From Ruditapes philippinarum (taxonomy: Eukaryota): DNA of 64,000 bases. The DNA is taken from contig NW_026864813.1 of NCBI RefSeq assembly GCF_026571515.1, forward strand, positions 248,001 through 312,000, given 5' to 3'. A program made the translations under genes and the position numbers. This document shows, piece after piece, positions 23,700 through 64,000 of the stretch (positions are counted from its first letter, which is position 1; each line of letters opens with the position of its first letter). A model generated the notes under the pieces. The model saw only the letters and a list, made by a program, of their open reading frames with translations. It was not told where the DNA came from and searched no databases.

Positions 23700-26600
23700 A
23701 TGCACACATTCATTCATTTTTTATGTTTAATGGTTTCGCCATTTTTACCAGGTAAGTGATATTATTATCATTATTATTATTGTTATTATTATCCTGAGGA
23801 AAACTTTATGAATATATTTTATTAATTTTATGAAAAATAGACACACGTAAAGATGCACCGAAGGCAATTAAAACGAATCAGTCACTTCCCACTAAAGTGT
23901 TTACTTGGATATATGTACGACGTATATATCGACGTTTTATATATATTTTAGCATACCTTATGCATTGGAAATAACTTAGGAAATAATCTCTCCCACCATG
24001 TCATCATGGAACATGAATGGAGCCTATTCAGAAATGAATAAATTTTTACTCCTACATAGAAAGGGCCTCAAAAGGAAGAGGGCGGGGGGGGGGGGGGGCA
24101 AAAAGCCGTCAAAACACATCTATCTATATGAGGTGAAAGGTTAAATGAAACAAACTTTTGATGGCATCTGTTTATAATGTAGTGTTTTCAGATTATCATG
24201 GTCCTCATAAATATAATGAGTAATTTATCGTACATGCTTTTTATCTTTTGAGCACTACACTGTGAGCTGCATGTATAAGAACTTATCGAAATGTCTGACC
24301 ATACTCAATATTTTTAGACCCACAATTCAAATACATGTAAAAATGAACATCCCCATGCTGCCATTGGCCATAACTTAGGATAAGTTTGTAATGTACATTG
24401 CATAGAGTAAGAATTTAATGATCTATTCTTTTTTTTTTCAGTTCAGATCAGTTGCTCCTCCTCGACAGGTGGATATTGGAAGGAATGTAACGGCGTGTTT
24501 TATTATTTTAGTGCTAAGAAATATAACTGGGATGACTCTTTGCAATTTTGCGGTCATTTAGCAGACGACACTCATGTAGCTGACCTTGGCAAACAGCCGG
24601 TAGATTTAGCAAAAAGTTGTAGCTTTGATTTAAAAGACAATAGGCAATACTGGATAGGTAAGATTTAAGGATCAAAGATTAAAGATCTGTTGAAAAGTCC
24701 AAGTATTTATTTTTAAATTTTTAAAACATTACATGCATAGAAAAAGTTTATATTTTTTCGATTTTATTCCATTTCTTTGAATTGTTATTATGTAAGTAAC
24801 CTTTAGTTATCTATATTGGTTTTAGATATAAAATGATCGAACGTTATTCTTATCTAGACATTCAAAAAGTGTAGACGTCGATCTAAAATTGATACTGTCA
24901 TCCTTTTTTCCGTTAGAATGCTGGTACGGGCAGGCACAGAGCGATTGTACAACATTAAAAAAGCAAAGGCAAAAATTAGAACGCCGTCTAACATCATGCA
25001 ATACCATCGCATATCCTATATGCGGAACAAGAAAAAGGCCTATCAAAGCACTGCCAACAGACAAAAAATCAACACCCGCACTAACATCGAAGAAACCTAC
25101 GCGCGCACAAATAACAAAAGGCTTAAAAACCACATCAACAACGCATGTTCAGGCAACAACATCTCGAAACACGGTGCAAGCAACAACAAAGGTAACACAT
25201 GTACCAACAACAAGAACGTTAACGCGTGCGCCATCAACAAGAAAATCTACACGGACACATACAACAAAACCGACCACACAGGCACCGATAACAAGAACGA
25301 AAAAGCATCTGCAAACAACAATAAACTTAACACAATTGTTTTCAATAAGAACAAAGAAGCAAACGAATACTCCAAAACCAAAAATGTCAAAGCATGTAGC
25401 AGCCAGTAAAAAGTCAATGTTTCCGCCTACAACAAAATTGTCAAAGAACGCGCCAACAGCAAAAACGTTAAGCAATGCGGCAACATTTAGAAATTCAAAA
25501 CATAAGCAAACAATGAATAAGTCAAAGTCTATGTCAGTAGCTCGAAATATAACGCATGCAACCAAAACGGTAGCGATCGTACCAATAACAAGACAGTCAT
25601 TGCACACACAGACAACAAAAACGCCAACAAAGGAACACACAGAAATAAAAACAACAGAGACACAAACAGCAAAACATACAACAGAGGCACAGACAGCAAA
25701 ACATACTTCATACTATCAGCAAGCCACGTGGAAGACAAAAAGGACAACAACGACAGTGCCGCCAACAACAGGAACAGGCATGGACAAGATTTAAATAATA
25801 AATATAATAATAAAGTTTAAAAAATGCGTTTTATATCTTTCATCTTTGCTCGTGAATTTACATTTACAAACTCTGTCGGGCTGTTTAAAATAGGTCACAT
25901 TTAAGACTTTAAAACCTGTCAGATATAAATGCGCTAGATAACAATATATATTCATATATAGATACTCTACTTTATCGAATTTACTCATTTTTTTTCAGAT
26001 TATTCTTGGGTTCGAATCAATACAAGTGAATATTTTGTCAACCATATATTGTACAATTACACTTTTGCCAGAGAGTATTGCATACGGACAAAGAATGCAT
26101 TTCTTATGACGTCACTAAGTCCTGTTCGCTACATTCAAATTCTGTCTCGACTTAATCTACGCGACGGGAAATACTGGATCAAAGGTTTGTGAGAATACTG
26201 ATTAAGGGGAGTAACCGTTGCAAGGAGTTTGTTATGAGGTTGTAAATTTTTACGCTATTGTAAAAAATAATAACGGGAGCAATGACATTAATTTCAATGA
26301 AAAAATGTTTTAATGACGTAAACCATTTAGAAAAATGCTAGAATATGTAAACAAATATCTGCAAGGGATTTGCGGCTATGATCGGAATATCTGTCCCTCG
26401 TTACCGCCAAAGTTGCGGGTACCCTCTAGACGGATAGTCCGATCCGAACTGCAAAATATGACAGATCTTCTTATTCTCGTTTAGCTCTTTTATCAATCTT
26501 ATTAAAATCAGCTCTAAATAAGGTTCCGCATTTAGATCTGACCGCGACCAAATACGAAATCATTTCTGGTGACATTGTACACAGCCAATCATCGGCGAGC

Positions 26601-28072
26601 TTTCATAATTTCTAATTTTAACCTCGGGAAAACCAATGCTGAGTAGGTGATTTTTATGATTTCTAGAACAAACATGGCAAGTTGGCAAAAACAGTTTTGC
26701 CTAAATTATCTCTATTTTTACAAGTTTATTTGTTAAGAATTACTTTAAATAATTTTATTAACAAAAATCAACAAGTTGTTTGACGTTCACGGATAATTGT
26801 ATTTTGATAGTTCTTCTAATGTCTATGTTAAAATCAATTTGATTGCATGGCTAATCGAGAAATCCGAATTATAAGTTATGGAGGCGAAACATATACGGTT
26901 GTCATCAGATCTACATAAAGAAATAAGTAGACATGAACTTTATTCAGATTTGTCTTTAAATGTGGTTTGACCAACATCTGCATTAATATTTTAAAAGAAC
27001 TATAATTACATCGAAAACATTACACATATTTTTCAGTGCTTTGCAAGTACATGACATATGTGTATATTTTTTCCATCCTTTTGCTGACCGGCTTGATCTT
27101 GATCTAATGAATATTTAATTTTCTGAAAAAAAGAGAAAGAACAATAACAGCATAAATAGAGCAACAAAAAGCAACAACAAAAAAACAACAACAACAACAA
27201 CAGCAACATGAACAATAACATGAAACAAAAAAAAAACCAAAAAACAAAACAAAAAACACAACAAAACGTTAATGCGCACTGCTGTTTCTATCAGGATACA
27301 ATATGTTTTTGCCAAATAACATTGTTTGGTTTGATGTTTGATATCTGGAAAAAAATTCCATATTCTGCTTCCCTTTCTTGATCTTGTTGATATTTACTGT
27401 GATTTTGTATCGTATGTTACTGTAAAGTAAGCAAAATGAAGAAATTTAAAAACTAATGATTACAATTCAAGCTATATTTTCGAGAAAGTGAAACAAATAC
27501 GTATATTTTCAAGTCATTTTATGCTTATTTTGAAAACACGGATAATATTACTGAACGATATAACCTGTATCAAGAGAATAAATATAAGTGATGTATCAGT
27601 TGTGATAAAATGAATAGTTATAATTTCAGCTCATGACAATGCTCTTTCTGCCCAAGGATGCCTCACATACGACAGCCTGAAACGGTCATTATCCCAAAGC
27701 AATTGTTCACGAGCGTTATATAGCGTATGCAGTAGGTCAGTGTTTGGTAACAACGACACCGATATACTAGAGAACGCTGTCTTTAAACAAATGTTAAAAG
27801 ATATGACCCTGGATAGAACGAACACAGCCGTTAGTAGACGACATCGGATGAGCATAAATAACGATCACCGTTGGTCTGTGAGAGCTACTGGGGTTATTGG
27901 CCTGCTAATTATTGGTGTTGTTATGGGTTTAATGGTACTGAGTGACTTGACAAAGCTAAGTGGTTGTCAGTGTTACAGGTTGTGTAAATGTTGTAAAAGA
28001 ATATCTCGTACGTCGAAAGATAAAAATTTAAAAATGTTGAACAAAAACCCGCAAACTTCAAGCCAATGCTGA
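23700..28072 (+). CDS. Gene A: type-I membrane protein, SP - C-type-lectin-like domain - Thr/Lys-rich mucin stalk - CTL-like domain - basic juxtamembrane motif - TM - Cys-rich tail (~585 aa)
   Basis: Exons 23700-23751 (MHTFIHFLCLMVSPFLP), 24442-24657 (WKECNGVFYYFSAKKYNWDDSLQFC...YWI), 24917-25777 (C..C..SCNTIAYPIC plus mucin), 25999-26184 (YNYTFAREYC...YWIK), 27630-28072 (CLTYDS..NCSRALYSVC; TM GVIGLLIIGVVMGLMVLSD). All introns phase 1; intron 3 needs a GC donor. Confidence 0.8.
27150..27270. repeat. (AAC)n / A-rich low-complexity tract in intron of gene A
   Basis: aacaacaacaacaacaacagcaac...aaaacaaaac. Confidence 0.75.
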
Positions 28073-29816: not shown

Positions 29817-30200
29817 AAGCCTCGCCTTGACAAAACCAACATAATGCATTTCCGATCAGCAGAGATCCAGTTCAGCCTTCGCATCCGGTATCAGTTTCTC
29901 TACTTGTTATAGGGTTTGTAAGCGACAAAACCAACATAATGCGTTTGCGATCAGCAGAGATCCAGATCAGCCTGCGCATCCGGTATCAGTTTCTCTACTT
30001 GTTATATGGTTTGTAAGCGACAAAACCAACATAATGCGTTTGCGACCAGCCTGATCAGGATCCATGCTGTTCGCTTACAAATCCTATACCACGTAGAGAA
30101 ACTGATAGCGAACAGCATGAATCCTGATCAGACTGCGCAGGCTGATCTGGATCCGTGCTGATCGCAAACGCATTATGTTGGTTTTGTCATGGCGCAGCTC
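29817..30200. mobile_element. Second copy of the Sola-like MITE with internal ~95-bp triplication of the left arm
   Basis: gacaaaaccaacataatgc at ~29829, ~29924 and ~30019; right TIR ends gcagctc-atat, followed by (AC)n(AT)n. Confidence 0.8.
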
Positions 30201-30206
30201 ATATAT

Positions 30207-30240
<34 letters not shown>

Positions 30241-32495: not shown

Positions 32496-35400
32496 TTATC
32501 CTCCTGCGTTGCCATCTCTTACAGGACTGGACTTTCTTTGTTGTCTAAGGTGCTTCCACATAGATTGCACGTGCTCTTTTGTCATCTTGAATTGAACTGG
32601 TTCATACTTGTACGGTTTGAGGTGGACATCTGTCTCATCCAGTTCATTGTCTGTTATAATGTTTGCTGAAAGATAAAAACATATATGAAAGAAAATTTGT
32701 TTTATGTGAATGAAAATAAAATCTCGCTTAGAAAATGATAAGAAAATAATCGCAATATTAAATTATGTGTTATTCCTATCTTCCCCATCCTATCAACCCA
32801 ACCATAGCAGACATACACATTTAGAAAATTGCATACGTAATAAATTTAACCATGCACCACAGATAAATTTCCGGAATTTGAAAAGGATTCTATTTCTGTC
32901 ATATCAAATATTTGCATATACACATACAGATGTCTATTCATTTTTTACAATATTTTCTATGTTTAGGTTTAAGTATCTTATCACAAAAAGAGCAGAGAAA
33001 TATATAGCTATGGTGAATAAATTTGTGTTTTAATCGCAGAAGCTTATGATAATAAATAACATGCAAATGTGCACTTTCTTATCGGTAACGTTCATATTCT
33101 TTCGGGTAATGTATTCACTTTATTTCCATACCCGTGCCGCTTTAACGACTCCGTAAAAATGGTATTGCCTTTTCAATACTCGCTACAGCTGCTAAGTGAG
33201 GGTAGCAAATTTTACGAAATCATACGCAGTTATCTGAACAACAAAAAGAAGAGCGGGCAAAACATCTGCCATCATTTAAATTAAAACCAGGTTTCTTACC
33301 GCCTATCCAGAAAGAATTGGCTTTAGAAACGGGATTAGAAAATATCCTAAAGTAATTAACGAAACTGCTGGTTTGCTTGTACACGCTGCAATTGTAATTG
33401 ATGAAGTATTTCTTCTTGCCAACTTTAAGCCAGGCTGGTTCTCCTATTATGTAGAAAAGGTAATTTAATTATAACAGAATTATGATGTCCAATGATAAGA
33501 AATTAATATTTTGTTAACAACAAGAAGATTTCGGAATAAATAAAAAAGCAAGCATGTGTTTTTCAAATATTTCATTACATTTTATAAAAAAAGAAAAGAT
33601 TTGAACTGAAGAAATAAAAAGTGCAGAGCTTACCCGAAGTTTTAGATAGAGCAAGAGTGTTTACTTTTGCTTTAAAATTTATTAAAGGCTTTGTAGTGCT
33701 ACTTGATGAGGTATATGTTGGCTTTGTAGTGCTACTTGATGAGGTATATGTCTGTTTTGTAGTGCTACTTGATGACGTATATGTCGGCTTTGTAGTGCTA
33801 CTTGATAACGTATATGTTTGCTGTGTAGTGCTACTTGATGACGTATATGTTTGCTGTGTAGTGCTACTTGATGACGTATATGTTTGCTGCGCAGTGCTTC
33901 TTGGTGACGTATATGTTTGTTGTGTAGTGCTACTTGGTGACGTATATGTTTGCTGCGTAGTGCTTCTTGGTGACGTATATGTTTGTTGTATACTTGACTG
34001 TGTTTGAGTTGTCGTGCCCGGTTTATCACTCATGCAGAACATCATAAACTGAAACTGTGCACTTTTATTGGCTGCTATATGCACATAAGGTCCACTGTAT
34101 TGCATAACACTACCCTCCTCCTTACCCGACGGACACGACACACCTAAAAAAATTAAGGAACAAATTTGAGAATAAACTGCGTTTCAATTCACCAAGAAAA
34201 ATATTTTAAGACATGTACAACTTATTTCGAAAAAAATCCCACCCCACCCCCCAAAAAAATACAACAACATAGAATAACTCTTCTTTTTCGTTTGTATTTT
34301 TCTGGTCGGTCGTACATATACCTCATTCAAAACTTATTAATAGCAAAAGGATGGGTATCTTAGGCAGAAAGAAAAAGAACAAAAAACTAGTTTTAGTATT
34401 TAAAGAGAAATATTTAGTGCCACCCCTTCGGTAGAAAACGCAATTGAAAATCATAATAGTTTAAGAAATAACATCAACTTTGTTAGTATGGCATGGAGAA
34501 CCAAAATAAAATCCATTCAAAATCAGTTATCCCTAATATCAATTCAGCTTTGGAATGAATTATCAATAAATTTAAGAGGACCAGACACTTGAGCAAAGTT
34601 TAAAAGAAAACTGAAAGAAATGTTTAAATCTTCCGTCTTTTTTATAAACAGTGAGCGTTCACCAACAGTACACCACAGACGCCTTAGAAATAATTGCAGG
34701 AGTTTTAATTCCGACTTGTATAACAATCATATTGTTCAAACAAAACCAAGCTTTTGAATGTGGTGCTTTTAAATTAATAGAAGACACTGAACATTTTTTT
34801 TTATTTCATTGCCAAAACTATACCATCAAAAGATAGATCATTTTAGAAATACTAGAGAATTCTACCCTCTCGGGACAGAAAAGTTACTTTTTGGTGTAAA
34901 TACTTTAAATGTTTCTCAAAACATGTCCCTCATTTTATTAAAGAAATGAAAAGGTTTCGATAATTTAACATCATTTTGAATTTCTTTTTTACTTTGTTTT
35001 TATAATTCTATACAAATTGATATTACTATCGTCAATTGTTTTAAACAATAATAAGAATTTTTTCAGAACCCTCAAAAACAGAAAAAAAAACTTTTAAGGA
35101 AAATTGTTTGAGTAAAAATATTAAATTCTCTTTAATCCACAGAAAATTTAAAAAACTACAAATAGCTTTTTTAACAAAAAAATTTTCTTGTAAAAAAATT
35201 TTACATGGAAAGTTCCGGTTTTAAGTCTTGCGGGCCCCCTATAAGTATTTTTCCAGAAAAAACTGAACATTTTTTTTTGCATGTTTTTAGTAGAACATAA
35301 AATAAAACCCTGTAAACACTTTTAGAAAAAAAAAATTCAATTAAAATTGAACATATTTTGAAACTGTTGACTCAACATTAAATTGGAAATTTAACATTTA

Positions 35401-37098
35401 CTAAAAAAACGTTAAATTTTTAAGCGAAATTCTTACCAACCCAATTTTAACCATTTTTTAGGGTTAAAAAACCCCAAAAAAAACCCATTCCCCATTTTTT
35501 TTTTTATAAATGCCATCCCTTTTAATTTAATTTTGAAATTTTTTTTCAACATTTAATCTTTAAAGGATTAAAATGAAAATTTTTTTCTCGGTAAAAGAAA
35601 ATTCATTTTTTGTTTAAAAAAGAAGTTTTTAAAAATAAAAAACACACGCAACAGAGGGAAAGTATAAAAATTTCAGAAAATTATTAATTTACTTATTAAT
35701 AAGTTTTTTTTTCGTTTTTTTTTCTATTATTAATGTTTTAGTTCTCAGTATAAAATATAATATCATACTTTGCAAATGTCTCTTTTTTACATTGAAGTTT
35801 AGATAACATTACAGTCAGCTTTTTATGGGAGGGGTCAAAACCTTTTGAATATTAAAAAAATGATTGAATGAAAAGGAAATACCTGGACTGTTTAACCAAA
35901 ATTCGACTTTCATGCGTCCTGTTATTCCAAGCTCTTTGCCCAAAAGTCCCATATAAGTGTAGTTTCCGCCAGCAAATAACTGACCACGCATTTTGTTTTG
36001 GCATTGATATTTTGCATGACAATAGGTGTATTCAGTGCGAGATAACTTGTAATATAGCCCTTGTCCACCAACTCTAACCCAATCTGAAAAAAAGTAACCC
36101 AAGAGAAATACAAAACTAAAAAATCAAAATTTAAGAATTTAAGAAAAATTCATTACTTATTGATTAACAATGAACTGTTTGCATGAACCGAGTAATTTTA
36201 TTAAATCATATAATTATCATTAGCTGATGAATGGCTTGTTATATTGTTACACAGCGGATAGATCTGACCTAACGAATCTACCACTTATTTTTGCTTAGCC
36301 TGTAAATAAACATCAGCCAAAACTTCATGCATTTTATTTTATTAATAAGGAAATGCAGTATACGACTAACTCGTATATGAACAAATTTACTTAGTTCTCA
36401 ATCTAATCTTAATCTTCTTTAATGATATACAAATCACAGAAATTCAAACAAGTAGTTTATTATACATGTATATAATTACTATATTTTTGTAAAAAAACTA
36501 CACCCAACAACCAAATGAAGTTTCTTTTAAATTAAAACATCACACAAACAAGCCGATAAACCAGCAGGAATGTTAATAAAAACATATTTCAGTACATTAG
36601 AATAGTTTTTTTGTAATCTTTTCTCAAATTAGAGTTGTATAAAGAAGATTCCATCGATTTCAAACGGAAACAGAATATTAATATATCAAGAAGATATTAT
36701 TTTGTGAAGTAAAGTGCTAACCATGATTTAATGTGTGACTACTGTTCGATGTCTTGCAGAATGATTTTTCTTTTTCGCAGATAGGATTCATAAATGACGA
36801 GCATTGTTCATTTTGGTTAATGGCCACATTACTTCCATCGAATATAATTGTCCGGCACATAGGCATAGACGGATCTGTAATGTATATGGAATATGTAGTC
36901 ATTTTATTTAAATTTGAATTAACATGATAAATATAAATTCCGTCTAATATCATTTTAATCAATTTCAGAAGCCAGGTAATTTGGACGTGCACGTAGAAAT
37001 ATATTATTGCTGTTCTTCTGATAATGACACAGTTTGAAATGTATTAGTGATAGTGAGTTCTAGAAAAAAAAACTACAAAGATGATTATTATTATTATT

Positions 37099-37136
<38 letters not shown>

Positions 37137-38470
37137 AATAATGATGATAACAATAATAATAATATTACTGATGTAACATTAACAATGGTGATCTTAGTTT
37201 ATTGCGAGCATAAGCTGTTTTTGTTCCACATATACACCTATTTTCTATTGAAATAAGGCATAATACGCCTTGCTTGTATAAATCGATTAACTGAATGTGC
37301 TCTTTCTTATTACGTGCATTTTCGAGATTATGTATACATTAGTCAAATACAGTACGATGTAGCCTTTGGCCCTGTTTATATCAATATGTAGTTTCATTAG
37401 TACAATGACATTAAGTTATTAAATGTGAAAGATATTGCTCACATTCCATATTTATCCAGTATGGTGTATGATCTATCTTGGAAACGTGACATAGATTAAA
37501 CAACTGTGCAATGCCTTGTGACGTCATGGAACCTAAATCTACTGGTGCACTTCCAGACAAATTCCTACAATGCCCTATTAGGCTGTCATATGGCATTGTG
37601 ACTTTATCAAAATGGTAACACTTGTCCCTGCATGCATGCCAGCCCGAATTTTGCCCACATTCTGAAACACGAACAATTTTCAGTATGCATACTTGGAATA
37701 AAAATACCAAGAAAAACAACAAAACAACATAAAATTTTATGCAATATGGAAAATGGTTATTTACAAGTCATACTGACGTCAATTAAACGTCAAACGTATA
37801 TAATGTCAAATCGTTGATTACTCGCTAAATGCAGTTCCCTCCTCCGTTTTGAAATAGAAATAGAGTTACATAGTCTAAAACTGCAATGTTGAAAATAATG
37901 CTGGCGTAGTTTGATTGAGCTTGTTCACAGTAGTGGTAAATGAAAGCTACCGTTCACATCCCTAGCAACAGCGTAAACAGAATGCAACATCTAAATAAGA
38001 AATTGTGAATTTTTTCTTTTTTAAATATTCGTTATAAACATTTTCTCCGATGGTACATTTTGTATTTATCTTTGCAGGTCTAGCGAAAAATAGAAATATA
38101 TTAATTACATCTATTATATAAATATAATTTTATAATACTACTATATCATACAAAGAATATTGCCAAGATCTTGAAATTAAACAAGTAAAAAGTGAAGTGT
38201 GTATATTATATTCATCAAAATCACGATCTATCAGAACTTTCTAATCCACCCATACCATTGCAGTTATGTTAAAAGGCAGGTCATGACTCCATCATGCTTT
38301 ATGTTAAAACATTTTACAATACATTTTCCCTTTAAATGATAGTCGACAAAGACTTAAATAGAAATGATACAAAGCTTTAATTAATAACAAATAAAATCTT
38401 TAAAAATGAAATTACCACATGTCCTGATGAGGCCTGCAACAATTATGACTCCAAGTACTGTTGCAATCAT
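32496..38470 (-). CDS. Gene B: secreted multi-C-type-lectin-like protein with Ser/Thr repeat spacer and unique C-terminal tail (~483 aa)
   Basis: Exons 38470-38416 (MIATVLGVIIVAGLIRTC), 37661-37443 (WHACRDKCYHF..HC..PYWI), 36874-36722 (MCRTIIF..CSSFMNPICE), 36083-35883 (YTYCHAKYQC..FWL), 34143-33634 (C..GPYV..MFC plus repeats), 33443-33300 (WLKVGKKKYF..FWIG), 32665-32496 (TDNELDETDVHL..). All GT-AG, phase 1, total 1452 nt in frame; no TM segment. Confidence 0.82.
33688..33992 (-). repeat. Coding 33-bp tandem repeat (~9 x QQTYTSSSSTT) in gene B exon 5
   Basis: gtagtgctacttgatgacgtatatgtttgctgt unit repeated. Confidence 0.92.
34430..34970 (+). mobile_element. Decayed 3' end of a CR1-like LINE in intron of gene B
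   Basis: Translates in pieces to ..WNELSINLR..TLSKFKRKLK.. and ..ECG..EDTEHFFLFHCQNY (LINE ORF2 C-terminal zinc-finger region). Confidence 0.65.
37080..37166. repeat. Compound microsatellite (ATT)n(GAT)n(AAT)n
   Basis: Directly visible. Confidence 0.9.
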
Positions 38471-45600: not shown

Positions 45601-48600
45601 CAATCCCCAATTTAAAGCATTACCAGAATTTTTCAGCCAGATTTCGAGAGTCATCATTCCAGTCAATCCTAATTTCGATGCTAATATTGGCATATATAAA
45701 TTATCATTGGGTGTTACCATAGTACCATACCACGTTGTTTCACATAATTGTTTGGCTTCACAATACGTGTATCTATTCTCAGATACCAAATACGATGTAT
45801 CGTTTTTTCCTATATCTATCCATTCTGTGAATATAATATATACAAACAAATAAATATTGTCATCAATATTGACCTGAATCTGATTAATTGTCATTAATGT
45901 TTCATAATTCAAGTTACACAATGGGTGATTTGCATGCACAATAATAAAGTTTTCAATTTTCGCAAAATATAATGAAGAAAGAAAAAAAGATATATTTAAA
46001 CCATGTATACCATTATACCATACATTGAAAAATGGAAGATTTACTTCGCAATCCGATAATTTCCGGCAAAAGGTTATTCAATATTTCAATGTTTCCGGTC
46101 AATATTGCCAAACAAAATACATGTATAATAATTTAATAATCATTAATTACATTAAAGGAAAGTAAAAAAGGAAGAAAAAAAAAGAAATTAAACATTGTGT
46201 TCCATTCATTTTGCCAATATGATAAGATAGCATGTTAAATAGTATTTTAAAACCGTATTTCTTTATGATCAAATAATATCAAACAGTATTCAATGTAACA
46301 CCTACATTTATTGAAATAAAATCATATTTATTAAAGAAAATAAATGTACCATCAAATTTCAAGGTATTGTTTGCAGGCAGATGACACAACGATTTGTTCG
46401 TCTCACAGATGGGGTGCATTACAGAAGTGCATGACACATTTTCTTCTATGCTTACATTATGTTTGGAAAATGTAATCGTCCTACAGACACCGCTACCTGT
46501 AATGTGTAGAAATAATTGGTAAACAATACGTTAAATATAATTAAAGAAATAATAATATTAATAATTATTGTGATTGTATTAATAATAATAACGAAAATAA
46601 TAATAATGTACATATTTAAGCCCACAACCAATTTGCAAATTTTGCAACTGTCGACGTTATTCTTGACATGCCATTTCCTAGTACTTTATATGTTAAAATA
46701 TACTGAGGTTTCCGGCCGCTTACACATTTTCTCCTCTGAATAGCAAACGGTTCGAAACCGCGGCAGGTTGATTTCAAAATATTGTTCACATCAACGTATC
46801 AAAAATACAGAAAAATATCAATATTTCGCTTACCATACTGGCTTATCCAATATGGTGACTGTTCTAATTGCTCAAATAAGCAAGCAGACAACAACTCCTG
46901 AATTTGTTCCTTTTGCTTTGATCCAAAGTCCACTGGTTTACTTGCATGTCTCGAGAGACAGTGAGAGGGCAGGTCTTTGTAAGTTATCTGTGCTGGACTC
47001 ATAAGGTAGCATGTGTCAACACATAACTGCCATTGCCATGTTCCCCTATTTGTGTCTGCACCTATATTTAATTAATAATCTTATATCAGTTTTGTACGAA
47101 AAATTATAGCATGAGACAGACGTTAAAATGTGATACACATTAATGTATCACCTCTTGAATGGATGGATGAATTAATTAGAAATAGAATAAGTAATATGTC
47201 TTTGTAATTTTGTTTTGTTTAAATAAGCTATTGAAATACTAGTTTATGAAGATATAATAGAGGGATTCTAAACAAACATAAATAAAATTGAAAAGTATGA
47301 AATAACAGATCGTTTATCATTCTTTTGACGTAAAGACATAAAATGTGATATTCTTAAGAGCTATCGTTATTTCACACGACAATAAAGCTCGAAAACAAAG
47401 TGAAAAATGCGGAAAAGCACAAAAAGTGATACGAAATTGTGCGACTTTGCACATTTTTTTTGCTTTTAATTTGGCGTGACCAATCAATGGCAAAAGGCGT
47501 GGACGTCTAACTTCACGTCACCATCCCCCCACAAAAATCCCGTTATAACAACCCTTTTTCGTCCAATCGATGCTATAATGAATACAAAATGAGCAACAAC
47601 ATGCTGTTACAATGAAACTTGCAAAAGAATAATATCTTTTTGCCCCTGCCGCCTTATGATTGGCTCTCGGCCAGCTTTATCACTTCGTGTAACCTTTTTT
47701 TGTATTAATACGGACTCGATTGTTGAAGCTTAAAACTTAATGTAATAAATAGAGGATATTGAATGAGGGTAAGTTTAATACTGAATTTATTGAACGAGTT
47801 GATGCGAGGCTCTGGCGAACATTAGATTTTTTATTCGACGAGTTCAATAAATTCAGTTACTGTAATGAACCTACACGAATTTAATATTCTATTTATTACA
47901 TACCAAAAATAAGGACCGAAAAAAAGAGTCATTTTTACATTGACGCGCCTACTTATAGCGCTAAAATTTAGCGCGTCTTTACACTATGTTTGTATAACGC
48001 TAATGACATCACGTCAAAATATATATGCACGGCCGTGCAATACAGTTTTACAGAGTCACAATCTCGGCACAGGTATGTGATAAAAAATTATCATTTAGAT
48101 GTAGCAATGTCGAATCTATTAAGCGCCTTTCGGATCGTGTTTCCGCGCTTTAGCTACGCCTTATTACACTTTTGTATTGCCCTTCGTGGACTTTCTTTGT
48201 TGCGTTAAATATATTTGAGATATTAATATGAAATTCTTACACTGCTTAGAAGAATGAGCAACAAATAAACACAGAAAATTTCATGTGAGTAGCTTCTTAC
48301 ATTACAACAATATTTAATTTTACATAAACACATGTCGGCGACAGCGGCTTACTCCAAAAAGTTATTGACGTCAACATCATAATATTAACGTACAACTTGT
48401 GCTTCAACATTACGCAGTCAATGAATGTTACTGCTTCTCAAAGTAATGTCCATCACTAAATTTCGTATGCCACTTTAACATTAATGATCGTGAAATTCTC
48501 TTTTCTCTGTTTGTCTGCTGATTTTTATCAAATGTTTTTGTAGGTGTCATTCCCAAATTACAACAAAAATTTATGATCGTTTTATGATCGCGCGATTTTC

Positions 48601-50624: not shown

Positions 50625-53600
50625 TTAATCTGTGACTGGGATTTCATTAACTGTTTCCTCAAATCTTGATTCTTTTGCTGTGTTTTCAAGTTTATCTGTT
50701 CCATTCGATCCACTTTCTCTCTTTATTACATCTTGACAGTCCTAAAATATATTGCATATTAAGAGTTTTCTCGTCAGGCGATGTTTAATTGTTTATCTTA
50801 ATATATGATAGAAAAAAATCACTAATTTAATTTCCTAACAAAGTAACACAACAAAACAAAAAGAAAACAAAAACACCCAAATGAATCAGAGAAAACCAAA
50901 AATGCAACAAACCCCCATTCCTGAAAGCAACAACAATAACAACGAGAGGAACGCTACTACTACTGCTACTGTTAATACTACCGCTGCCGCTTATGCTACT
51001 GATACCGCTACTAACGTTACTACCGTTACTACTACTTTAATAATGGCAAAGTATATATTTTTAAGTGACAATTGCAACTGTATAGGATACAAAGCACCAT
51101 GGAAGTATTTTTTAATAATAAATCAAAATGGTAATGTTTATCAGAATAATGTTAAATTGTTCTCATTATCGTATGTCTTTCTTCCCTACAAGTATGATAT
51201 TATTATACAAATAATCATTAATTATTCATTTTTTATGATTCCTTGAATTATTTAAAAGCGTGTGTTCAATCGTAATATTTTTTCTACGCAATTAAGTCAA
51301 TTCTTTGGGGCGAACTATGTTAATCATTGAGTAAGGCCAATCACACGCCATAACAAAAGCAATTACCTTATGACATTGGTCAGTTCTCCAACATTTTTGT
51401 TCCACAACAGTTGCTGATATGCTTATTACGATTCCTATCAATTGCAAAACGAAAACCAATAACATATCAGATACGTCAATCGGCTTAAAATTTCCAAATA
51501 TAATTCCACCTAAGTGTCCGGTTATGAAACTATCTTCTGATACTTTATCGCAAGTATTTGATGATCGCCACCACTTATCCATTATGGCAAAGAGCTTTCC
51601 AGTTTCCGTAAGATTTGTTATTGCTTCTGATATGTCAGAACAAAGTTGTTGTCCTTGATTGTCTCTACGACAAGCTAGACCGTAATCTATTTCAAACAAT
51701 TTTTCTTGTAAAAGCATTAGTTCACAATTTTGATTTATCACCTTTTGTCCCTCGTACCCTTCTACAACTGCTGCAAAGGGTTTATCAATGTCCATGACTC
51801 TTTCAACAGCTTCTTCAATGTTAGAATAATAGGTGTATCTTGAGCGAATATGTCTATTCATTAATATTTGCACGTTATCATTTAAGTTGAGTGGCATCTC
51901 ATACCAGCCACCGTATTGAACATCAGCCTGTTTTGACATTTGGTCAAATGTTTTAAACGGAATGACTGGTTTTTGTGTAGAAGAGAACAATATATACGCT
52001 GCCAATGAAGCTATATATGAGACAATAATTAGTAAAGAAAATGTCCAAAAAAATACCGATGAAATCCTGCGAGCAGTTGAAACAGGGTGTAAATCTCGAG
52101 TGTCTGCAAAATGTAGAAGCAGAAGATATTTCATTACTTGGCATTTTATGTTATAAACCTGGAACATGCCTCAGTCATGAGACTGTGACAGATCAAACTA
52201 CATTTATATGGAAAAAAAAGAAAAAAAAACAACAAAAAAAACCCCCACAAAAAACACACACACACATACACAAAATCCGATATCATAATAACATATCTTT
52301 ATAGAATAAACAGAATATATCGCATAAGGTAAAATATTGATTTGTGGGAAAGCCTTATAGAAAGAAGTACACACCTTTGAGAAGAAACAAAGACAAAGTG
52401 TAATGTAAACTTTGAAAAGCGCTCTGTCCATCTGGTTGACTGTGTCGGTCTATGATATATTGTACAGCAGCTGATATAAGCAAAGCCGCAATGATACACA
52501 TCCAAAGAGCTAGTGAGAAAGGCATAAAGAGCAAGCCAAAGCTTTGAGTTCCCTTTATATCTGGATGCCGCATCAATATTTGAGCCCCAGTTGTTGCGAA
52601 TGGACTTGAGAATGCCACGACACTAGATCTGATTTCTGATATCATTAGATCGGCGACCGCTAAATCAGCTGTCTGAAAACGATGTAAAAATACATGAAAC
52701 ATAACATATTTTTATAATTAATCAAAACATTTACAAAACGGATAAAAACGTTTGTATTAACACATCACTAATAAGTACGGTTTTCAAAAAATCCAAGATT
52801 GAAATTTAACTGTATATTTTCTTTTACAAGTTTTATAACCAAAAAAAAAAAAAAAGATATCGAAGTTGAAACTTAGAACAGCGAATGTAAAAATACATAA
52901 GGTAAAGAATTTTATCTTGTTAGCACACTTTATTCAATGGGCTCGAGGAATAAATATGACTCGCATAGAAAGTAAACATTTAATTCGAAATTTAAGCATG
53001 CGTTAATAAGGTACCACGGACAATTAAGAAATATATAAAAATGTACATTTGAGACTAAATCCCCAATCACGCCATTGACTTGAATGCCTTCAGCTGTATA
53101 TTTTATTCGTCCGTACTCTTTATTTGGACTGTTGTCAAAACTGAACGTGAAGTTCGCAATTTTTGTAATCTCTTCGAGTAAGTCGACTAAAATACCTTCA
53201 TATCCAGTTTTTGCCGCCATCATCCATGGATAATTCTGGAAAAAATCTTATTACAGTTAATCAAACACTCCTATGATATTACAGTAATGGCTTTTCTAAG
53301 TTTTGAAGACATTTTGTGGATTATGCATTAGAAACATCTTTTCAACTTTATACATAAAGAAAAAGTCGATTAATCACTTCATTAATATAATATAACATAT
53401 GCATATTTATTTCTTTAAAACTGATTATTTTGACAGATTAATCGAGTTATTTCTTTAGAATTTCAAGAAAAAATAGTAATCAAAGGATTTCTTTCGATGT
53501 CAGTTGTCAGTTAATATCTTCATACAACAGGTTATTATATCCTTAGTCTGCCGGCGGCAGCATATATTTCCCATGCGACAAGCGGATACCTAGATCAGCC

Positions 53601-55775: not shown

Positions 55776-55786
55776 ACTTATATAGA
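55776..55786 (-). promoter_or_regulatory. Candidate TATA box for the IR-like gene, preceding a putative short 5'UTR exon (donor near 55725)
   Basis: Minus strand CTATATAAG about 55 nt upstream of a CTGAG|GTACAT donor-like site; weak because the background is AT-rich. Confidence 0.25.
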
Positions 55787-57364: not shown

Positions 57365-58175
57365 AGAATACAATAGAATACAATAACATTTATTTCCAAT
57401 CAAGAGTCATGTTAAATGGCATATAAATCACAATAATAATGTGATCAGAGATCAAATAGATATGCTAGAGAAAATAAAACGTGATTCGCATTAAAGCAGT
57501 AACAATAAACTGAAATAGTAAGAAAATAATTGAAAAAATAAAATTTTGCTAACCAGATTTAACTATTAAACTTCATATTACATATAAAATGATACGTAGA
57601 TACCCAATAACTTATTGCTGTATCTCATCTTCAGTTTTCTCAAGTCGTTCCAAAAATGATAGATAAAGATTTTACATGTAGTTTAGCTCTACTGAAGAGA
57701 TGCAATCTCAAAATTTACTAACCATTATATATAGTTGGAGGTAATACTTCAAATTGAAGGAGAACTGCCCTGTACAGTACACACCTTTCACTTTCAACAT
57801 AACCTTTTCTAAAAGTTGAAAAGCTGGAGATCTTGTTAACCTTGTATAATACTAATACAACTGATAATGAAATCAAAATATAAAACAGATCTCCAAAAAA
57901 ATCACCTAACACAGCATCATTGCATGTTTTTTTGTTTATTTTTGTGAACCCTTAACATATGTTTTAGGAATTTTGTACGTAATTGTTCAAATGACCTTTC
58001 ACTAAAGCTTTGAAATAGACACACACCCTCTTTATTCACTTTACTGGTTGTTGTATTCAAAGTTCCCCATATTTCACTAGCATAAACTAGAACAGGTTTA
58101 ATAGTAGTATGGTCAAACAAATGCAATAAAGTAATAACATTAGTATTTAAATTACTTAAAGCTTTGCCTCTTTCA
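57365..58175 (-). mobile_element. Decayed 3' LINE fragment
   Basis: LHLFDHTTIKPVLVYASEIWG...KFLKHML..HK is typical of LINE ORF2 downstream of RT; AATAAA and a short (ATTGT/ATTCT) tail at ~57365-57395. Confidence 0.7.
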
Positions 58176-59072
58176 TTGTTTGTTAAGTTCACATTTCATA
58201 TCACATAGCTAGAGTGATATTATGCTCCCGCTTTCGCCGTCAAATTGAGTTGAGTCAATAATATTTTTCAAGAGATTGATTATTATAATGGTGATTGACC
58301 AATAGTTGATTATAAGAAATGTTTTGGATAACATTATAGCTATATATATTATAAAACGACTGTTCCACTAATTGAATATTCCGAAGATATCTACAGCAAT
58401 GTATGTGGGCTAATATGATAATTGGTTATTTTTGCATAGTAAAATATAAACTTGTTAATTTGATTTTTACCTGTTTACTCAACATTAACACTTTGATGGG
58501 CTTACTGTCACTTACTATGAATGTAAAAGAGAAAGAAATTTTTATTAAAGATATTTAATTCCAATTCTACAGCAATGTCCGTGGGTTACGTGGATTATTG
58601 AGAATTTTTGCATAGTAAAATATAACATTAAATAAAATATAACTTCATGATTGAATTGCAAACCTGACAAATATGCTGGCGACGCTTTGAATAGCCCAAA
58701 CACTTTTAGCTGATTATAACTTGCAAGTTCAAGTAACATTTTTACAAAAGTCATCATATATCGGATATTGAAAGACGGAAATGAATTATGTCTTACTTTG
58801 TTACAAGGCTGAATGAAAAATCCCGTAAAGCGGAAATAATCTATTTTTAATTTGTTTGCAACAGTTACTCATATTCATTTCAGTTTTTACTTTTCATTCT
58901 GAAACAAAAACACAGAAAAAGAGCATATAAAATGATATCAAATATCTTAATAGATCAATAAAATTGTTGAACATGGTACATGTATCTCTATCATCTGAAT
59001 ACAAGTGTTATAAACATGTGAAACAATATTTACAAAATAGAGTACATGCATTTTTTCTGATTTTTTGAGGTT

Positions 59073-62000
59073 TTAGGAGGATTTCCTAGTTTTAAGTTTC
59101 GATAGGTCTGCTAATACAATCAGCAAAACAATTGCACACAGAAAAAGTGCACTGAATACACCAATTGCTTTTGATGATTGACGCGTATCTTCGGCACTGC
59201 CTTTCTTTCTCCTATTTCTTGACGTTTTTTTCGAATCGACAGTCATATTTTGCAGTAATTCCATGAAAATTTTATCGTTTTCCAGATCGTATGTATTTGA
59301 TTTGTTACGTGAGGAACAAATACAGATACCATATTGTTTGTTTTCACATGGTATTGAAGATATTGTTTCATCATATGAATTGTAAGATAGACAATCCCTC
59401 TGTATGTTCTCATCAAGGTAACCATGATCTGTAAAAATAAGCATCACTATTATTCTCAATTAAACAAGTATTAAACAGTAATAAGGATACAACAATAATA
59501 ATAAAATTCGATTATGAAAAAAAAAACATACCAAAAACACCGGCCTTTAAACTAGTTATATTACTGAAATAACTATACTGACTTTTTAACAACCCGTTAA
59601 CAGGTAGTACCTGGAGAAATCCAACATGAACTCTACTTCATGGATAATCTTTTTGTTTTATTCCTGTCTATATTAAAGTAATTACGTTTATCTACCTTTA
59701 ACCCAAAACGAGCCGTTTCGCAAACTCCATGTACGCAAATTTTGAATGTATGACAAACTATTGTGGACAATCATTAATGATGCATTGAATCGGCTGTGAC
59801 AAATCCTATCAGATTCGGTGTAGTTATTCTTATCATACAAAATGACAAATTCATTGACCCCGCTGGTGATTCTTTCAATCGTTACATCTTCTGCAGAAAA
59901 TGATATCACATTTACTAAGAGCTATTGTTATTTAGCAATGGAGACTATAAATCTAAAAGTGGAGACTGTCTTATGATTTATGTGTTACTGTGAAGGATAG
60001 TCTAACTATCGAGGTATGGTTCTAAAAATTGGAATAATGACTGAATGGAAAATATACTACTTATATACATTGCACTTACTAAGGCAATAAAAAATAAGCC
60101 TTAACATGTTTATCGAGAAATTTGGATGTTAGTATGGGTGATATCAATTTGATATAAAAAAGACAACAAAGATCATTTGGCACAACGTCGTTCACAGAAT
60201 GCAGCACCAAAACAGACAGCTGCATTAGTCGATACATAGAAAACACTCAAAAATACGGAGGGTGCACAAGGGCAGAGAACAGAAGGGACGGACCTGCGAA
60301 TAACTGTTACAATTAACATATGTATAAGTGCAAAGTCAGTTGGATGTTCAATATGAATAGGGGCAACAAACAATAAACACCGAACAATCCCATGTAGTTG
60401 AAAATATAACAACATTGGTGACCTTTTACAGCAGAAACACGTAAGAAAACTATTAAGTCTAGCTTTCGGAGTTAATGTAAGATGCAGATGTTACAGGGGC
60501 GATACAAATAACGACAAAGATATGTTAAAAATAAGATTGAAGAATAAAATTTATACTAGCGATAGCATCCATGGTTAGCAGAAAACTTATTTTTCGGTAT
60601 AAAGACAGTTAAAGGGATATAATTTTTACTTAAGGTATATAAATGTTTCTATGAAGTTTACACATAATACAAATATACTCATTAAAATTTGGATAATACT
60701 CTGGGGAATAGAAGTCCAACTTCTGAAAATTCTATTTTTAATTTGGCAGAAATAAATATATATTTAAAGTCTAATTAAAGTCTCACAATAAAGAATATAA
60801 GACCGGGACATTTGTTTTACTATGCAGGATTATTTATGAATGGGGAACATAATGTTGCAATGATATTAAAATTTTATTTAGTAGTTTCGCACGGCTGTAT
60901 TTATTAATTCCAGTGACATATGGTTTTCATTTAAATTACATAATTATATTAACATAACTACTGGTTACCTTTCTTTTGTTCGACCGAATCCTTCTCGCAT
61001 ATACAATGAGTTTTCAGTGTGCAATTAAAAGTGAACGGTTGAAACCGCGCTCTTGAACACCCAGTCTCTGTTCTGGGGCATGCCATTAATAATCTGCACA
61101 TTGATGCGTCCGTTGGCGTATGTAAAGTTTCGCTGACATTCACCCAGTATGTCTTATTTCTGTCTAGCTTCTCTCCGAGCAGTTTTGCCGGATCATTTGA
61201 GACATTGTGTGCCACAAAAGAGCTGATGTTTACACAGTGCTGCGAGCATTCGGAATACCCCATTTGCGCTATGCTAATATTATACTCAACGGACGGAAAC
61301 GAAATCCATTCAGATGCTTCAAGAAGACAGAAAAGACAGAAAAAAGATAAAACATAATATCAATTACAGAAAAATATATTGAAATGTATACATGTATAGG
61401 CATACAGATTAATGTTACCAACACTGAAATAAATGTACACAAATAAAATCTTAGAAGTAACATGATACATTTGTACATTGTTTTCTTTATATTTTGGTGG
61501 TCTAGATAATACAACTGTATGATAGGCTGGCAGTATTAGTCCGATTATATCCCATATTTATAACATTTTTTTATATCCTAATGACACTTTGAATTGTTAA
61601 TCATTAAAAAAAAATATTTGCGCACACACACTTAATGTTTACAATTTCTTAGTAAATTAAATTCAAATGTTATTGCAAGTTGTACTTTGATGTAAATTAT
61701 TTCAAAAGTGAAAGTATATTTCAAAATCAATCTACATATCCAACATTAAATCAATGCACTGGTTTCATGTCCCATTTCTGATACTTACATTAATTTCCAC
61801 TTCTATCTCCACCTCCCATAACGCTCGGTCATGCAGACGGACTGATTGCATCAACCGTCGGATCTGTTATAACATTTACAAAAAAATAATACCTTTGTAT
61901 GTCGAGTTGGATGAGTCATTGGTGTTGTAATCACTTTCACAGATAGCATACCCTTTGGTCAAGCATGATGTATTATGAAATTCAAAGTGTCCTCCATTAC

Positions 62001-62865
62001 GTTTTACAACTTGACATTGTGCATTTTTTCTTTCTGTTTTTACTGCAATATTTTAGTTAATTCTATTATTAAATATAACTAATATAAATCATGCATTAAA
62101 TTCACATTCAGGTGGTGTTGTTTGTAAGGATACTGTTCATTGTTAAACTTGATCCAATAACATGTATAGTTAAATACATAACCAATCACTTACATATTTA
62201 TATAAAACTATCTTTCATGGCCAAGTGGTTAACGTCGTTTACTTCAAATCACTTACGTCACACCGCTTCAGGTTCGTATCCAGACGGGGACTTGCATGTG
62301 AGGAAGCTAGCAAGCAAGCTGCCGTTTGTGCCTAAAATGATGCTCGGAAGGGCACCTGAGGTCTTTCGAATTCTCCACCGGTAAAGTTTAAAAGTCGCCA
62401 TATGACCTATACTGTGTTCAGCCGCGTAAAACCTAACATAAATAGTTTTTATGCACTAACAGTATATGTTCGCTACAATGGTTTTGAAGTGTATCAGTAT
62501 GGACCGTTAAGAATCTTTACACATTCGTATCAATTTTATGTACATAAAACGCATTCATTTTTCCGTGTTTGTCCAACCGTATTTATCAATATTTAAATAT
62601 TATATGAAATAAGATTGAACTGTATTAATTTACTTACGGATCCAGTAATTTTGTTTATTTTGCAAGGACACATTCAATGACACATTTGGGCATGAACCAT
62701 CCAGATTTTCGATAAAATTTGATGGGGATTTACTAAAGTTAGCCACATTTCCAAGACGCTTATCACAATATTGGACGGAATCATTGTACGTCTGCATTGT
62801 TTTTCCAAAATGAAAAGACCTGTTCAAACACCTGTGCCAGTTGTCATCTATACAATTTAAGACAC
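59073..62865 (-). CDS. Gene E: type-I membrane protein with three C-type-lectin-like domains, basic juxtamembrane motif and TM; signal exon uncertain (candidate 63490-63457)
   Basis: Exons 62865-62638 (WHRCLNRSFHF..YNDSVQYC..YWI), 62042-61893 (QCQVV..TSCLTKGYAICE), 61316-60969 (whole domain, YSECSQHC..YWV..C..NCTLKTHCICE), 59890-59696 (NYTESDRIC..FWVK), 59428-59073 (CLSYNS..PCENKQYGIC; TM IGVFSALFLCAIVLLIVLAD). All GT-AG, phase 1. Confidence 0.82.
62218..62445 (+). mobile_element. tRNA-derived SINE in intron of gene E
   Basis: A box TGGCCAAGTGGTTAA, B box GGTTCGTATCC, body with gcacctgaggtct...gccatatgaccta shared with the 6.3-kb and 14.2-kb copies. Confidence 0.8.
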
Positions 62866-64000
62866 CTGCAGTGACACATAAAATGATCATTTAAGATATA
62901 TGCATATAAAAATAATAATACGAGTTACACTTTAAATTGCTATAATTCTATAATTATAGTGGCAATTAGTTTTCAATGACTATATTAATTTAAGGCAACA
63001 ACTTGGAATGTTTCATGTTACCCGTATATAACTCTAACGGCAGCAAGCAAACAAGTGACAGAAACATACTCAAAATTCAATTTTTCGTTTCTAAAATGTT
63101 TTATATGGAAAAAATGACTCAAATATTTGACAAAGTCGATTTTATTTTCCATTTAAGGAGGAATTATTACTTAAGTACCCTAATTCTTTGTTCAGTGCAG
63201 TCGCCTCTCTTTCTTATTCATCCGCTAAAACATTCCTAACATGTTCAATTAGATGTGGCAATGTGCGTTTAAATATTAAAGGATTTTATTCAAACATCGA
63301 ACATTATTTTTCAAACAGCCAACGACGATGACAGCTATGGTTCCTTTCTTCAATCGGCGGGGTTTACTGCAGATACTGGCACTGTATATCTTTCCTAATG
63401 ACACTATTGGTACTAAGTCTTGTTGCATCTTGGATAAAAAACATCACTTTTCTTACCAAGGCTTGTCGCCACGGCAAAATGTATAAGCACCTAACTTTTA
63501 ATTTCTAATGTCGTATTTAGCCTTTTAATCATAACAATGAAATTTAAGGTGTTTAAGCTTGTCAAATAATATCTCATCCACACAATACATTTCCCACTCT
63601 AACACAGGATTTTACATTGCAAATGCCAACAAATAACTGCTAAAAATGAAGTATTGCTAGATATATGTACAATATATTACTATTCGAAAATGGTTCATTT
63701 TGGTACTCGTTCTGTTATACCTCTGCATTATATAAATGCTGTTAAGAATTTTTTTCTTATTGTTTCTAGATGATAATAAATTATGGTATTTTATATTATC
63801 TCTTTAATTATACAAAAGGTAAAACATACGGAATCCTAAAATTTAGCGGTCAAACGTACTGCTAACAATAGCCTGTGTATCTCGATCCTAGTCGTAAGAT
63901 GCATTTAAATGATTCAGAAATTGTATTTGATAGTTTTGTTATTTCGCACTGGCTTCGACAATCAAATACAGGATCCTAATTTAAAAAATCAATAATGATT

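Follow-up and report, generated by a model that had tools for sequence, protein, structure and literature searches.

C-type-lectin-like domains (CTLDs) that have no calcium site, such as those of natural killer (NK) receptors, CD72, and snake-venom proteins (snaclecs), bind their ligands calcium-independently. In CTLD group XIV (thrombomodulin, CD93, CLEC14A, and endosialin/CD248), the domain sits at the tip of a type I protein and is followed by a mucin-like stalk, a single transmembrane (TM) segment, and a short tail (PMC6852297). The C-type lectins of bivalves are hugely expanded (PMC10140915, PMC12842671), and their repertoires have been catalogued by domain searches (e.g., PMC10140915). 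Here we describe a locus of the Manila clam, Ruditapes philippinarum, contained in a 64-kb window (positions 248001-312000 of the 376,105-bp contig C13300 of the 1.4-Gb assembly), that carries four multi-exon genes, A, B, C, and E, and a gene for a receptor resembling ionotropic glutamate receptors (iGluRs) and the related ionotropic receptors (IRs). On balance, we favor the view that the four genes belong to a small, previously undescribed clam family of mucin-like surface and secreted proteins that are built from compact CTLD-fold modules.

The window contains no N and is AT-rich, with a GC content of 28-38% across most of its length. Gene A lies on the forward strand, and genes B, C, and E and the receptor gene all lie on the reverse strand. 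Gene models were checked by stop-to-stop translation of both strands and by codon-by-codon reading at exon borders. Genes A, B, C, and E are arrays of modules of ~105 residues that share the pattern W-x-x-C...(Y/F)-x-(F/L)-S...Y...C (in helix 1)...(Y/F)W(I/V/L), followed by C-x14-16-C-x7-C. Modules with CTLD hallmarks had been proposed for these genes in an original prediction made from the letters of the window, and they were recovered where it had placed them, with a resemblance to CTLDs far beyond chance. Most modules had also been said to be split at the WI motif by phase-1 introns, which is true of eight of the nine in the window; in these, an intron directly follows the (Y/F)W(I/V/L) strand, and the exception is the middle module of gene E. 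All introns that flank or split modules are in phase 1, with AG and GT at the expected places. In pairwise BLAST comparisons, A, B, C, and E proved homologous in module 1. A and E also share homology in their last modules and in their TM exons, the latter at 36% identity.

Sequence profiles place these modules among the CTLDs. A profile of nine N-half exons (alignment A1) gave 151 matches at E ≤ 10 when compared with all PDB sequences, and the 60 best matches are all CTLDs. CD72 ranks first (E 4.4e-5), and further matches include CLEC4F, CLEC2D, bitiscetin, PLA2R, botrocetin, langerin, NKR-P1B, CD94, DC-SIGN, lithostathine, and E-selectin, in alignments that all begin at the domain start and extend as far as the WIGL strand. 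The C-half profile, which is too short, found nothing significant in the PDB. When a profile of 15 N-half rows (alignment A4) was run against 1.84 billion representative proteins, 347 matched at E ≤ 1e-3. Re-scoring of the best 150 of these identified ~11 family members, which reach 40-70 bits per module and also match the C-half. The remainder of the best 150 score 10-30 bits per module, and the two of them that were scanned, P0002 and P0079, have E values of 1e-78 and 1e-39 for Pfam Lectin_C. Two family members from Mercenaria mercenaria show how near the threshold this family lies: P0134 scores 24.5 bits on Lectin_C (PF00059; cut-off 22.6) over model positions 3-55 only, which is the N-terminal half, and P0006 scores 13.3 bits, under the cut-off. 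A language-model feature search (ESM-Atlas) returned Lectin_C clusters for 27 of 30 matches. Within the family, the (Y/F)W(I/V/L) motif is invariant, the cysteine of helix alpha1 is present in 15 of 15 N-halves, and modules 1 and 3 carry the C-x14-16-C-x7-C series, with disulfides predicted from the cysteine positions.

A fold model was obtained for P0006, the 555-residue spliced RefSeq protein of M. mercenaria LOC123529654. Alignment A5 joined this protein and four other database proteins with the exon translations of the window and neighboring genes as separate rows, yielding 28 family rows in which the exon pieces land exactly on the two module halves. AlphaFold2 modeled module 1 (residues 28-137) and module 2 (residues 150-256) of P0006 with a predicted local distance difference test (pLDDT) score of 72-95. 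Both modules are modeled with the CTLD order of elements, beta0-beta1-alpha1-alpha2-beta2-beta3-beta4-beta5, and only nine residues separate beta2 (PYWINKR) from beta3. Foldseek returned at least 215 PDB matches for the model at E ≤ 1e-3, and all of those listed have the C-type-lectin fold. Its top matches for both modules are the tandem CTLDs of Endo180/uPARAP, the mannose receptor, DEC205, and PLA2R (E 4e-9 to 1e-7), with single CTLDs next. VIA-align superimposed module 2 on NKR-P1A, rhodocetin, flavocetin, BDCA2, and carbohydrate-recognition domain (CRD) 4 of the mannose receptor (Z 11-13; root-mean-square deviation 2.2-2.6 Å; 94-99 of ~107 residues), and module 1 on CD72 (Z 11.2; 106 residues). 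The check by AlphaFold and Foldseek that the original prediction had proposed therefore returned a CTLD-like fold for modules 1 and 2 of P0006, with E values down to 4e-9 and Z scores of 11-13.

That prediction had further described the long-loop region as shortened and the EPN, QPD, and WND motifs of calcium and sugar binding as missing. Across the family, the beta2-beta3 link is 9-12 residues long, and none of the three tripeptides occurs in any module of the window. Because of these two features, the modules should not be filed as C-type lectin CRDs. As judged from profiles and models, they are true CTLD-fold domains of a compact kind, in which the long loop appears to have been lost along with the classical calcium and sugar site.

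Several observations weigh against reading the modules and their genes in this way. Pfam searches with 15 single exons or open reading frames (ORFs) of the window gave no lectin match even at E ≤ 1. Module 2 lacks the usual C2-C3 cysteine pair and has a different pair of cysteines instead. The fold model covers modules 1 and 2 of the Mercenaria ortholog, not the spliced proteins of the window itself, and the unsplit module of gene E, submitted alone, gave a useless model (AlphaFold pLDDT 34). Module 3 and the middle module of E lie outside the fold model, and their likely CTLD identity is argued from sequence alone. No canonical splice donor follows the mucin exon of gene A. Moreover, three RNA-seq runs (unstated tissues, 1.1-1.8 billion letters each) contained zero reads on any exon of gene E (58400-64000).

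The silence of single exons on Pfam is what would speak for a chance pattern of cysteines and aromatic residues in unrelated or non-coding sequence. Such a coincidence is contradicted by the PDB and protein profiles, the Lectin_C score, the concordant AlphaFold2, Foldseek, and VIA-align results, and the feature search. It is excluded, with a residual probability we regard as negligible, by the profiles and fold taken together with a RefSeq model for gene B and orthologs in two other clam genera. This model, XP_060568283.1 (P0024; LOC132726890), is an “uncharacterized protein” of R. philippinarum that has exactly the splice junctions of gene B, including two extra 3′ exons.

Among described CTLDs, those of NK receptors, CD72, and snaclecs offer the closest parallel. 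They supply the best matches both in sequence (CD72, CLEC2D, bitiscetin, botrocetin) and in structure (NKR-P1A, rhodocetin, flavocetin, and CD72; Z 11-13). They share with the clam modules the core fold, a WIGL-like strand, the positions of the C1-C4 and C2-C3 cysteines (modules 1 and 3), and the lack of EPN and WND calcium-site residues. In contrast to these relatives, the clam modules have a deleted long loop, with ~9-12 residues between beta2 and beta3 rather than the roughly 30-40 of canonical domains. The clam modules also stand in tandem on a type I mucin-like protein, whereas the others form type II receptors or venom heterodimers, and identity between the two sets is just 10-18%.

The absence of a long-loop region is shared with other compact CTLDs, namely the Link (Xlink), intimin/invasin-type, and Bd2740-type domains. 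The C-terminal domain of Bdellovibrio Bd2740 superimposes with a Z score of 11.3 over 95 of its 109 residues. Unlike Link modules, which are not among the 50 VIA-align rows listed, the clam modules have cysteines and a WIGL strand that follow canonical animal CTLDs. Xlink (PF00193) found no match on P0001, P0003, P0006, P0024, or P0134, and Intimin_C found none on the family. Canonical bivalve C-type lectins, including secreted mucosal and mannose receptor-like ones, belong to the same superfamily and often occur in tandem arrays. They differ in retaining the long loop and EPN/QPD/WND motifs and in scoring as strongly on Lectin_C as P0079 and P0002 do, whereas the clam family is mostly sub-threshold.

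In layout, the tethered clam proteins are similar to group XIV, with a CTLD at the tip of a type I protein, a Ser/Thr-rich stalk, one TM segment, and a short tail. Unlike group XIV proteins, the clam forms have no EGF or sushi domains, carry two or three compact CTLDs of which one is membrane-proximal, and bear a juxtamembrane R-x-x-R site. Searches with EGF families found no match on the full-length orthologs. The sequence relationship evident between group XIV and the clam family is that of the CTLD superfamily.

The family extends beyond the window. When the N-half profile was run against the clam's own genome, it found 19 module matches, with none outside C13300 and a 30-kb contig, C10457. 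These matches define eight genes: A, B, C, and E in the window, F and G just beyond it, and H and I on C10457. The four-gene cluster first described thus becomes a set of eight genes, six of which lie within a 60-kb cluster that continues past the end of the window. Genes F and G have the order module 1, module 2, long Ser/Thr-rich exon, module 3, helix, R-x-x-R, TM segment, and short tail. Their last exon encodes the C-half of module 3, a short helix (...P-x-FK-x-M-x-x-E-M...), the polybasic R-x-x-R site, the TM segment, and the tail, and junctions are in phase 1 throughout. We take this layout as the archetype of the family.

Measured against the archetype, gene A lacks module 2. In gene E, an extra middle module, unique and unsplit, stands in place of the mucin stalk, and no paralog of this module was found in the 1.4-Gb genome. 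Genes of the B type lack the C-half of module 3 and the TM segment. Gene H is G-like without module 3 and the TM segment. In gene I, the head is F-like and the tail B-like, direct evidence that recombination has occurred at the level of exons. The original prediction had pointed out that symmetric phase-1 exons permit shuffling, and such reshuffling is visible in I, A, E, and the B-type genes. The N-halves of paralogs within the cluster are just 22-54% identical; H and I are 88-95% identical to G and F, respectively. A second version of the arrangement, in partial decay, is present on C10457 and comprises H, a truncated receptor pseudogene (noted at about 2037-2955 of C10457:10001-20000), and I. 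The possibility that C10457 is a simple haplotig of the window was ruled out, as gene order and content differ.

Relatives of the family were found only in venerid and mactrid clams (M. mercenaria, Mactra antiquata, and R. philippinarum), and all are annotated as “uncharacterized” or “hypothetical.” M. mercenaria has four loci on the same 81.9-Mb chromosome, the family there including LOC123529123/4, LOC123529654, and LOC123528926. The earlier description of the locus as lineage-specific is thus borne out, with Ruditapes, Mercenaria, and Mactra the only named sources of relatives among the 1.84 billion proteins searched. Other family matches are short unannotated ORFs in public read assemblies and metagenome contigs. 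Four “hypothetical proteins” from metagenome contigs of 1-5 kb (P0050, P0109, P0034, and P0151) are ORFs near-identical or related to exons of A, E, F/I, and the receptor gene; these are clam DNA in the samples, not microbial genes.

A literature search for the locus identifiers of the family found no mention of them, and no such family is mentioned in the abstracts of the reviews and surveys of bivalve C-type lectins that were found. Because most members fall under the Pfam threshold and are annotated as “uncharacterized,” catalogs based on domain searches have probably missed the family.

The layout of these proteins suggests how they might act. The tethered forms may be heavily glycosylated, mucin-like type I surface proteins, and B and C would be secreted derivatives. 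Two compact CTLD modules would be displayed at the tip of a Ser/Thr-rich stalk, with a third module near the membrane. The composition of the stalk, exemplified by the 33-nt (11-residue) tandem repeat of gene B (9.2 copies at 33688-33989), points to dense O-glycosylation. The modules would be unable to bind sugar through the classical calcium site, and most likely bind protein or other ligands calcium-independently, by analogy with NK-receptor CTLDs, CD72, and snaclecs. The R-x-x-R motif suggests that the tethered forms can probably be shed by a furin-type convertase. The tethered forms would act at the cell surface, and a role in mucosal recognition is possible as a conjecture, no better supported than one in reproduction.

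Fast-evolving reproductive proteins, either gamete-recognition or gonad-specific, would evolve much as this family has: paralogs within the cluster have diverged to 22-54% identity, the family is lineage-restricted, and gene E went undetected in three general RNA-seq runs. Furthermore, lectin-fold proteins take part in bivalve gamete recognition, as in the acrosomal lysins of Mytilus and oyster bindin. However, the conserved tail and stalk layout are atypical of known gamete proteins, and we consider a reproductive rather than mucosal or immune family unlikely. The membership of CTLD-fold proteins with acidic or Ser/Thr-rich regions in mollusc shell matrices, which is generally known (cf. PMC11772184), raises the alternative that the family consists of shell-matrix or biomineralization glycoproteins analogous to perlucin. 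Matrix proteins are typically not anchored by a TM segment with a short cytoplasmic tail, nor do they typically carry a basic C-terminal helix, and this alternative is very improbable.

The iGluR-like gene lies between C and E on the same strand, where the original prediction had placed an IR-like channel, and it is supported by Pfam matches to Lig_chan-Glu_bd (35.0 and 34.0 bits; cut-off 30) and Lig_chan (35.9 bits; cut-off 30.8). Its translation matches kainate/AMPA receptors of the PDB at E 2e-13 over M3-S2-M4. As in variant IRs and iGluRs that have no amino-terminal domain (ATD), M1, the pore loop, M3, S2, and M4 follow one another in order, and the two Pfam domains are present. No ATD was found: none of the ten ORFs in the 5 kb upstream matched ANF_receptor or another relevant family, and the recognized exons start at S1. 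What sets this receptor apart is its great divergence (E about 1e-13 to kainate/AMPA receptors). Judged by its translation, it is a genuine, highly divergent iGluR-like gene that is apparently ATD-less in the exons recognized. It is unusually isolated for a family that is normally multi-copy. The only other match to its large exon in the 1.4-Gb genome at E ≤ 1e-5 is the C10457 fragment, which has two stop codons. A protein search with the receptor exon recovered two ORF fragments, both unannotated, and an ORF with 51% identity in another sequenced organism indicates that the receptor is not a private pseudogene.

Could the tethered proteins A and E be dedicated auxiliary or ligand-presenting subunits of the adjacent ATD-less channel, making the cluster a co-regulated chemosensory unit? 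The receptor gene is closely spaced between C and E on their strand, and the only other copy of this orphan, the fragment on C10457, is again located between two family genes, which implies that the linkage predates the duplication. The state of this fragment points the other way. What is left of it is a portion of the S1/M1 exon plus 70 residues from the beginning of the last exon, without the S1 start, S2, or M4, and it sits between H and I, whose module exons (the heads of these genes) remain open. A receptor copy that was duplicated with its neighbors and then decayed suggests a linkage that reflects history and not a functional requirement, and the open reading frames of those neighbors speak against an obligatory lectin-receptor pair. 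An analogy to the single-pass auxiliary subunits Neto and SOL-1 had been drawn in the original prediction; neither CUB nor LDLa domains were found in any exon or ortholog scanned, and the analogy therefore has no basis in sequence. In addition, six of the eight family genes have no receptor gene as a neighbor. A dedicated partnership consequently seems decidedly improbable to us. Still more speculative, and very doubtful, is the proposal that the tethered CTLD mucins constitute the missing extracellular “head” of the orphan channel, either replacing the ATD or serving as ligand-capturing co-receptors. If true, a CTLD-mucin head on a channel would give clams a chemosensory receptor complex of a new, modular type. 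Most likely, the receptor gene is a mere neighbor caught up in the cluster.

Individual gene models require further comment (Table 1). The original prediction had A and E ending in a TM segment and B and C lacking one. TM segments were indeed found in exons of A and E and none in B and C, and in this respect both tethered and soluble forms are encoded, as had been proposed. The part concerning A is less secure. At 25778, the position homologous to the mucin-exon donor of F and G, gene A reads cag/GCATGG, with GC replacing GT. The donors of F and G are ACAG/GT and CAAG/GT, compared with ACAG/GCATGG in A, where a stop follows four codons on. The sole other phase-1 donor candidate bearing GTA is cca/GTAAAA at 25406. 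The TM ending of A thus rests on a non-canonical or cryptic donor. The GC dinucleotide either belongs to a GC-AG intron, a rare type, or reflects a mutation that destroyed the donor and made A short and secreted. Gene A accordingly has one of three forms: a gene with a GC-AG intron, a gene using an upstream donor, or a gene for a secreted protein of module 1 and mucin that has left the exons behind it orphaned. These later exons have open frames and show conservation (54% identity to a Mercenaria module), and Mercenaria P0134 has a module-mucin-module-TM layout within one gene model. We favor a single gene that spans both halves. The interval between A and B holds a tandem repeat at 29829-30050, made of 2.3 copies of a 95-bp unit with 95% matches.

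Genes B and C are collinear, yet their modules are only 31-43% identical. A recent tandem duplication was ruled out by this divergence and by introns that cannot be aligned. BLASTN of the B region against the C region aligned only the two extra 3′ exons (84% and 77%), the introns and other exons being too diverged. The third-module relic of C is frameshifted and is therefore probably skipped or dead, and it could be skipped without loss of frame because all exons are phase-1 symmetric. The B/C tail is predicted to be helical and is conserved in the Mercenaria protein P0006 and the Mactra protein P0064. By eye, the B-type tail can be aligned with the region of the TM forms that comprises the juxtamembrane helix and the polybasic site. 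From this correspondence, we infer that B and C may be genomically encoded soluble forms that end roughly at the polybasic site of the tethered proteins. A (GAT)23 microsatellite at 37080-37148 lies in the intron that splits module 1 of gene B.

Gene E had been thought to begin at 63490, but a first exon could not be placed there, and the candidate is the signal-peptide exon listed in Table 1. The proposed confirmation of exons by RNA-seq, carried out for gene E only, had a mixed outcome. The three runs mentioned above contributed no reads on its exons, and a 424-nt contig from run X1 (small, of uncertain type) spans 59006-59430 at 96% identity. This contig comprises the last coding exon and 70 nt of 3′ untranslated region and ends 2 nt from the predicted acceptor, which hints that the last exon is transcribed. 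In the first intron of E, a 30-nt stretch (62388-62418) draws many RNA-seq reads in all runs. These reads run on into unrelated sequence on either side, and the stretch presumably belongs to an abundant repeat or to an RNA whose gene lies elsewhere.

Table 1. Coding features of the CTLD-module genes and the receptor gene. Positions are those of the window unless a contig is named; a slash marks the exon-intron border.
Feature	Position	Strand	Basis or remark
Gene A, candidate signal-peptide exon MHTFIHFLCLMVSPFLP	23700-23751	+	predicted; phase-1 donor cag/GTAAGT
Gene A, module 1 N-half exon, ends ...QYWI + G, phase 1	24442-24657	+	near-identical ORF P0050 in public metagenome contig
Gene A, module 1 C-half + Thr-rich mucin-like exon	24917-25794	+	frame open until stop 25792-25794
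Gene A, last module (type 3) N-half exon	25999-26184	+	54% identity to Mercenaria P0134 module passing Pfam Lectin_C
Gene A, last module C-half, juxtamembrane helix, SRRHR site, TM GVIGLLIIGVVMGLMVLSD, Cys-rich tail, stop	27630-28072	+	translation
Gene B, conserved C-terminal exon ...PYKYEPVQFKMTKEHVQSMWKHLRQQRKSSPVRDGNAGG, stop, without TM	32496-32665	-	homologous to juxtamembrane helix + RxxR of TM forms; overlooked in first reading
Gene B, degenerate third module, N-half only, helix Cys gone	33300-33443	-	overlooked in first reading
Gene B, module 2 C-half + mucin exon, phase-1 donor TCGG/GTAAGC	33634-34143	-	junctions match P0024
Gene B, module 2 N-half exon	35883-36083	-	junction matches P0024
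Gene B, module 1 C-half exon, C-x16-C-x7-C	36722-36874	-	in XP_060568283.1
Gene B, module 1 N-half exon	37443-37661	-	translation, alignment
Gene B, candidate signal-peptide exon MIATVLGVIIVAGLIRTC	38416-38470	-	predicted; RefSeq model starts further downstream
Gene C, conserved C-terminal exon	about 42610-42765	-	84% DNA identity to that of B; overlooked in first reading
Gene C, third-module relic	about 43977-44115	-	frameshifted vs B and I (+1 and -3 indels); overlooked in first reading
Gene C, module 2 C-half + S/T/P/Q-rich exon, phase-1 donor TCAG/GTAAAC	44606-45055	-	translation
Gene C, module 2 N-half exon	45624-45824	-	translation, alignment
Gene C, module 1 C-half exon	46350-46496	-	translation, alignment
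Gene C, module 1 N-half exon	46834-47061	-	translation, alignment
iGluR/IR-like gene, three recognized coding exons	51292-53247	-	Pfam above cut-off
Receptor exon: M3, S2, M4, stop	51292-52170	-	Pfam, PDB match
Receptor exon: end of S1, M1, pore loop	52358-52711	-	Pfam
Receptor exon: S1	52933-53247	-	Pfam
Gene E, last module C-half, juxtamembrane helix, RNRRKK site, TM IGVFSALFLCAIVLLIVLAD, stop	59073-59428	-	contig of run X1 covers it
Gene E, last module N-half exon	59696-59890	-	translation, alignment
Gene E, middle module, sole unsplit one, 8 Cys, 6 N-glycosylation sequons	60969-61316	-	related ORF P0109 in public contig
Gene E, module 1 C-half exon	61893-62042	-	translation, alignment
Gene E, module 1 N-half exon	62638-62865	-	translation, alignment
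Gene E, candidate signal-peptide exon MFLSLVCLLPLELYT	63022-63067	-	predicted
Gene F	C13300:314.2-318.4k	+	just past window end
Gene G	C13300:327.0-332.1k	-	just past window end

If our reading of the family is correct, an animal CTLD can shed its whole long loop and keep the core and the canonical cysteines, a form otherwise found mainly in Link modules and bacterial domains. The locus would also provide a clean natural case of phase-compatible module gain, loss, and swapping inside one 60-kb cluster, and this cluster appears to include genomically encoded soluble versions that end at the convertase-type site of the tethered forms. The orphan receptor is a separate and modest curiosity. Should these proteins be surface or mucus recognition molecules of commercial clams, they would be new candidates for studies of host-microbe interaction or particle sorting.

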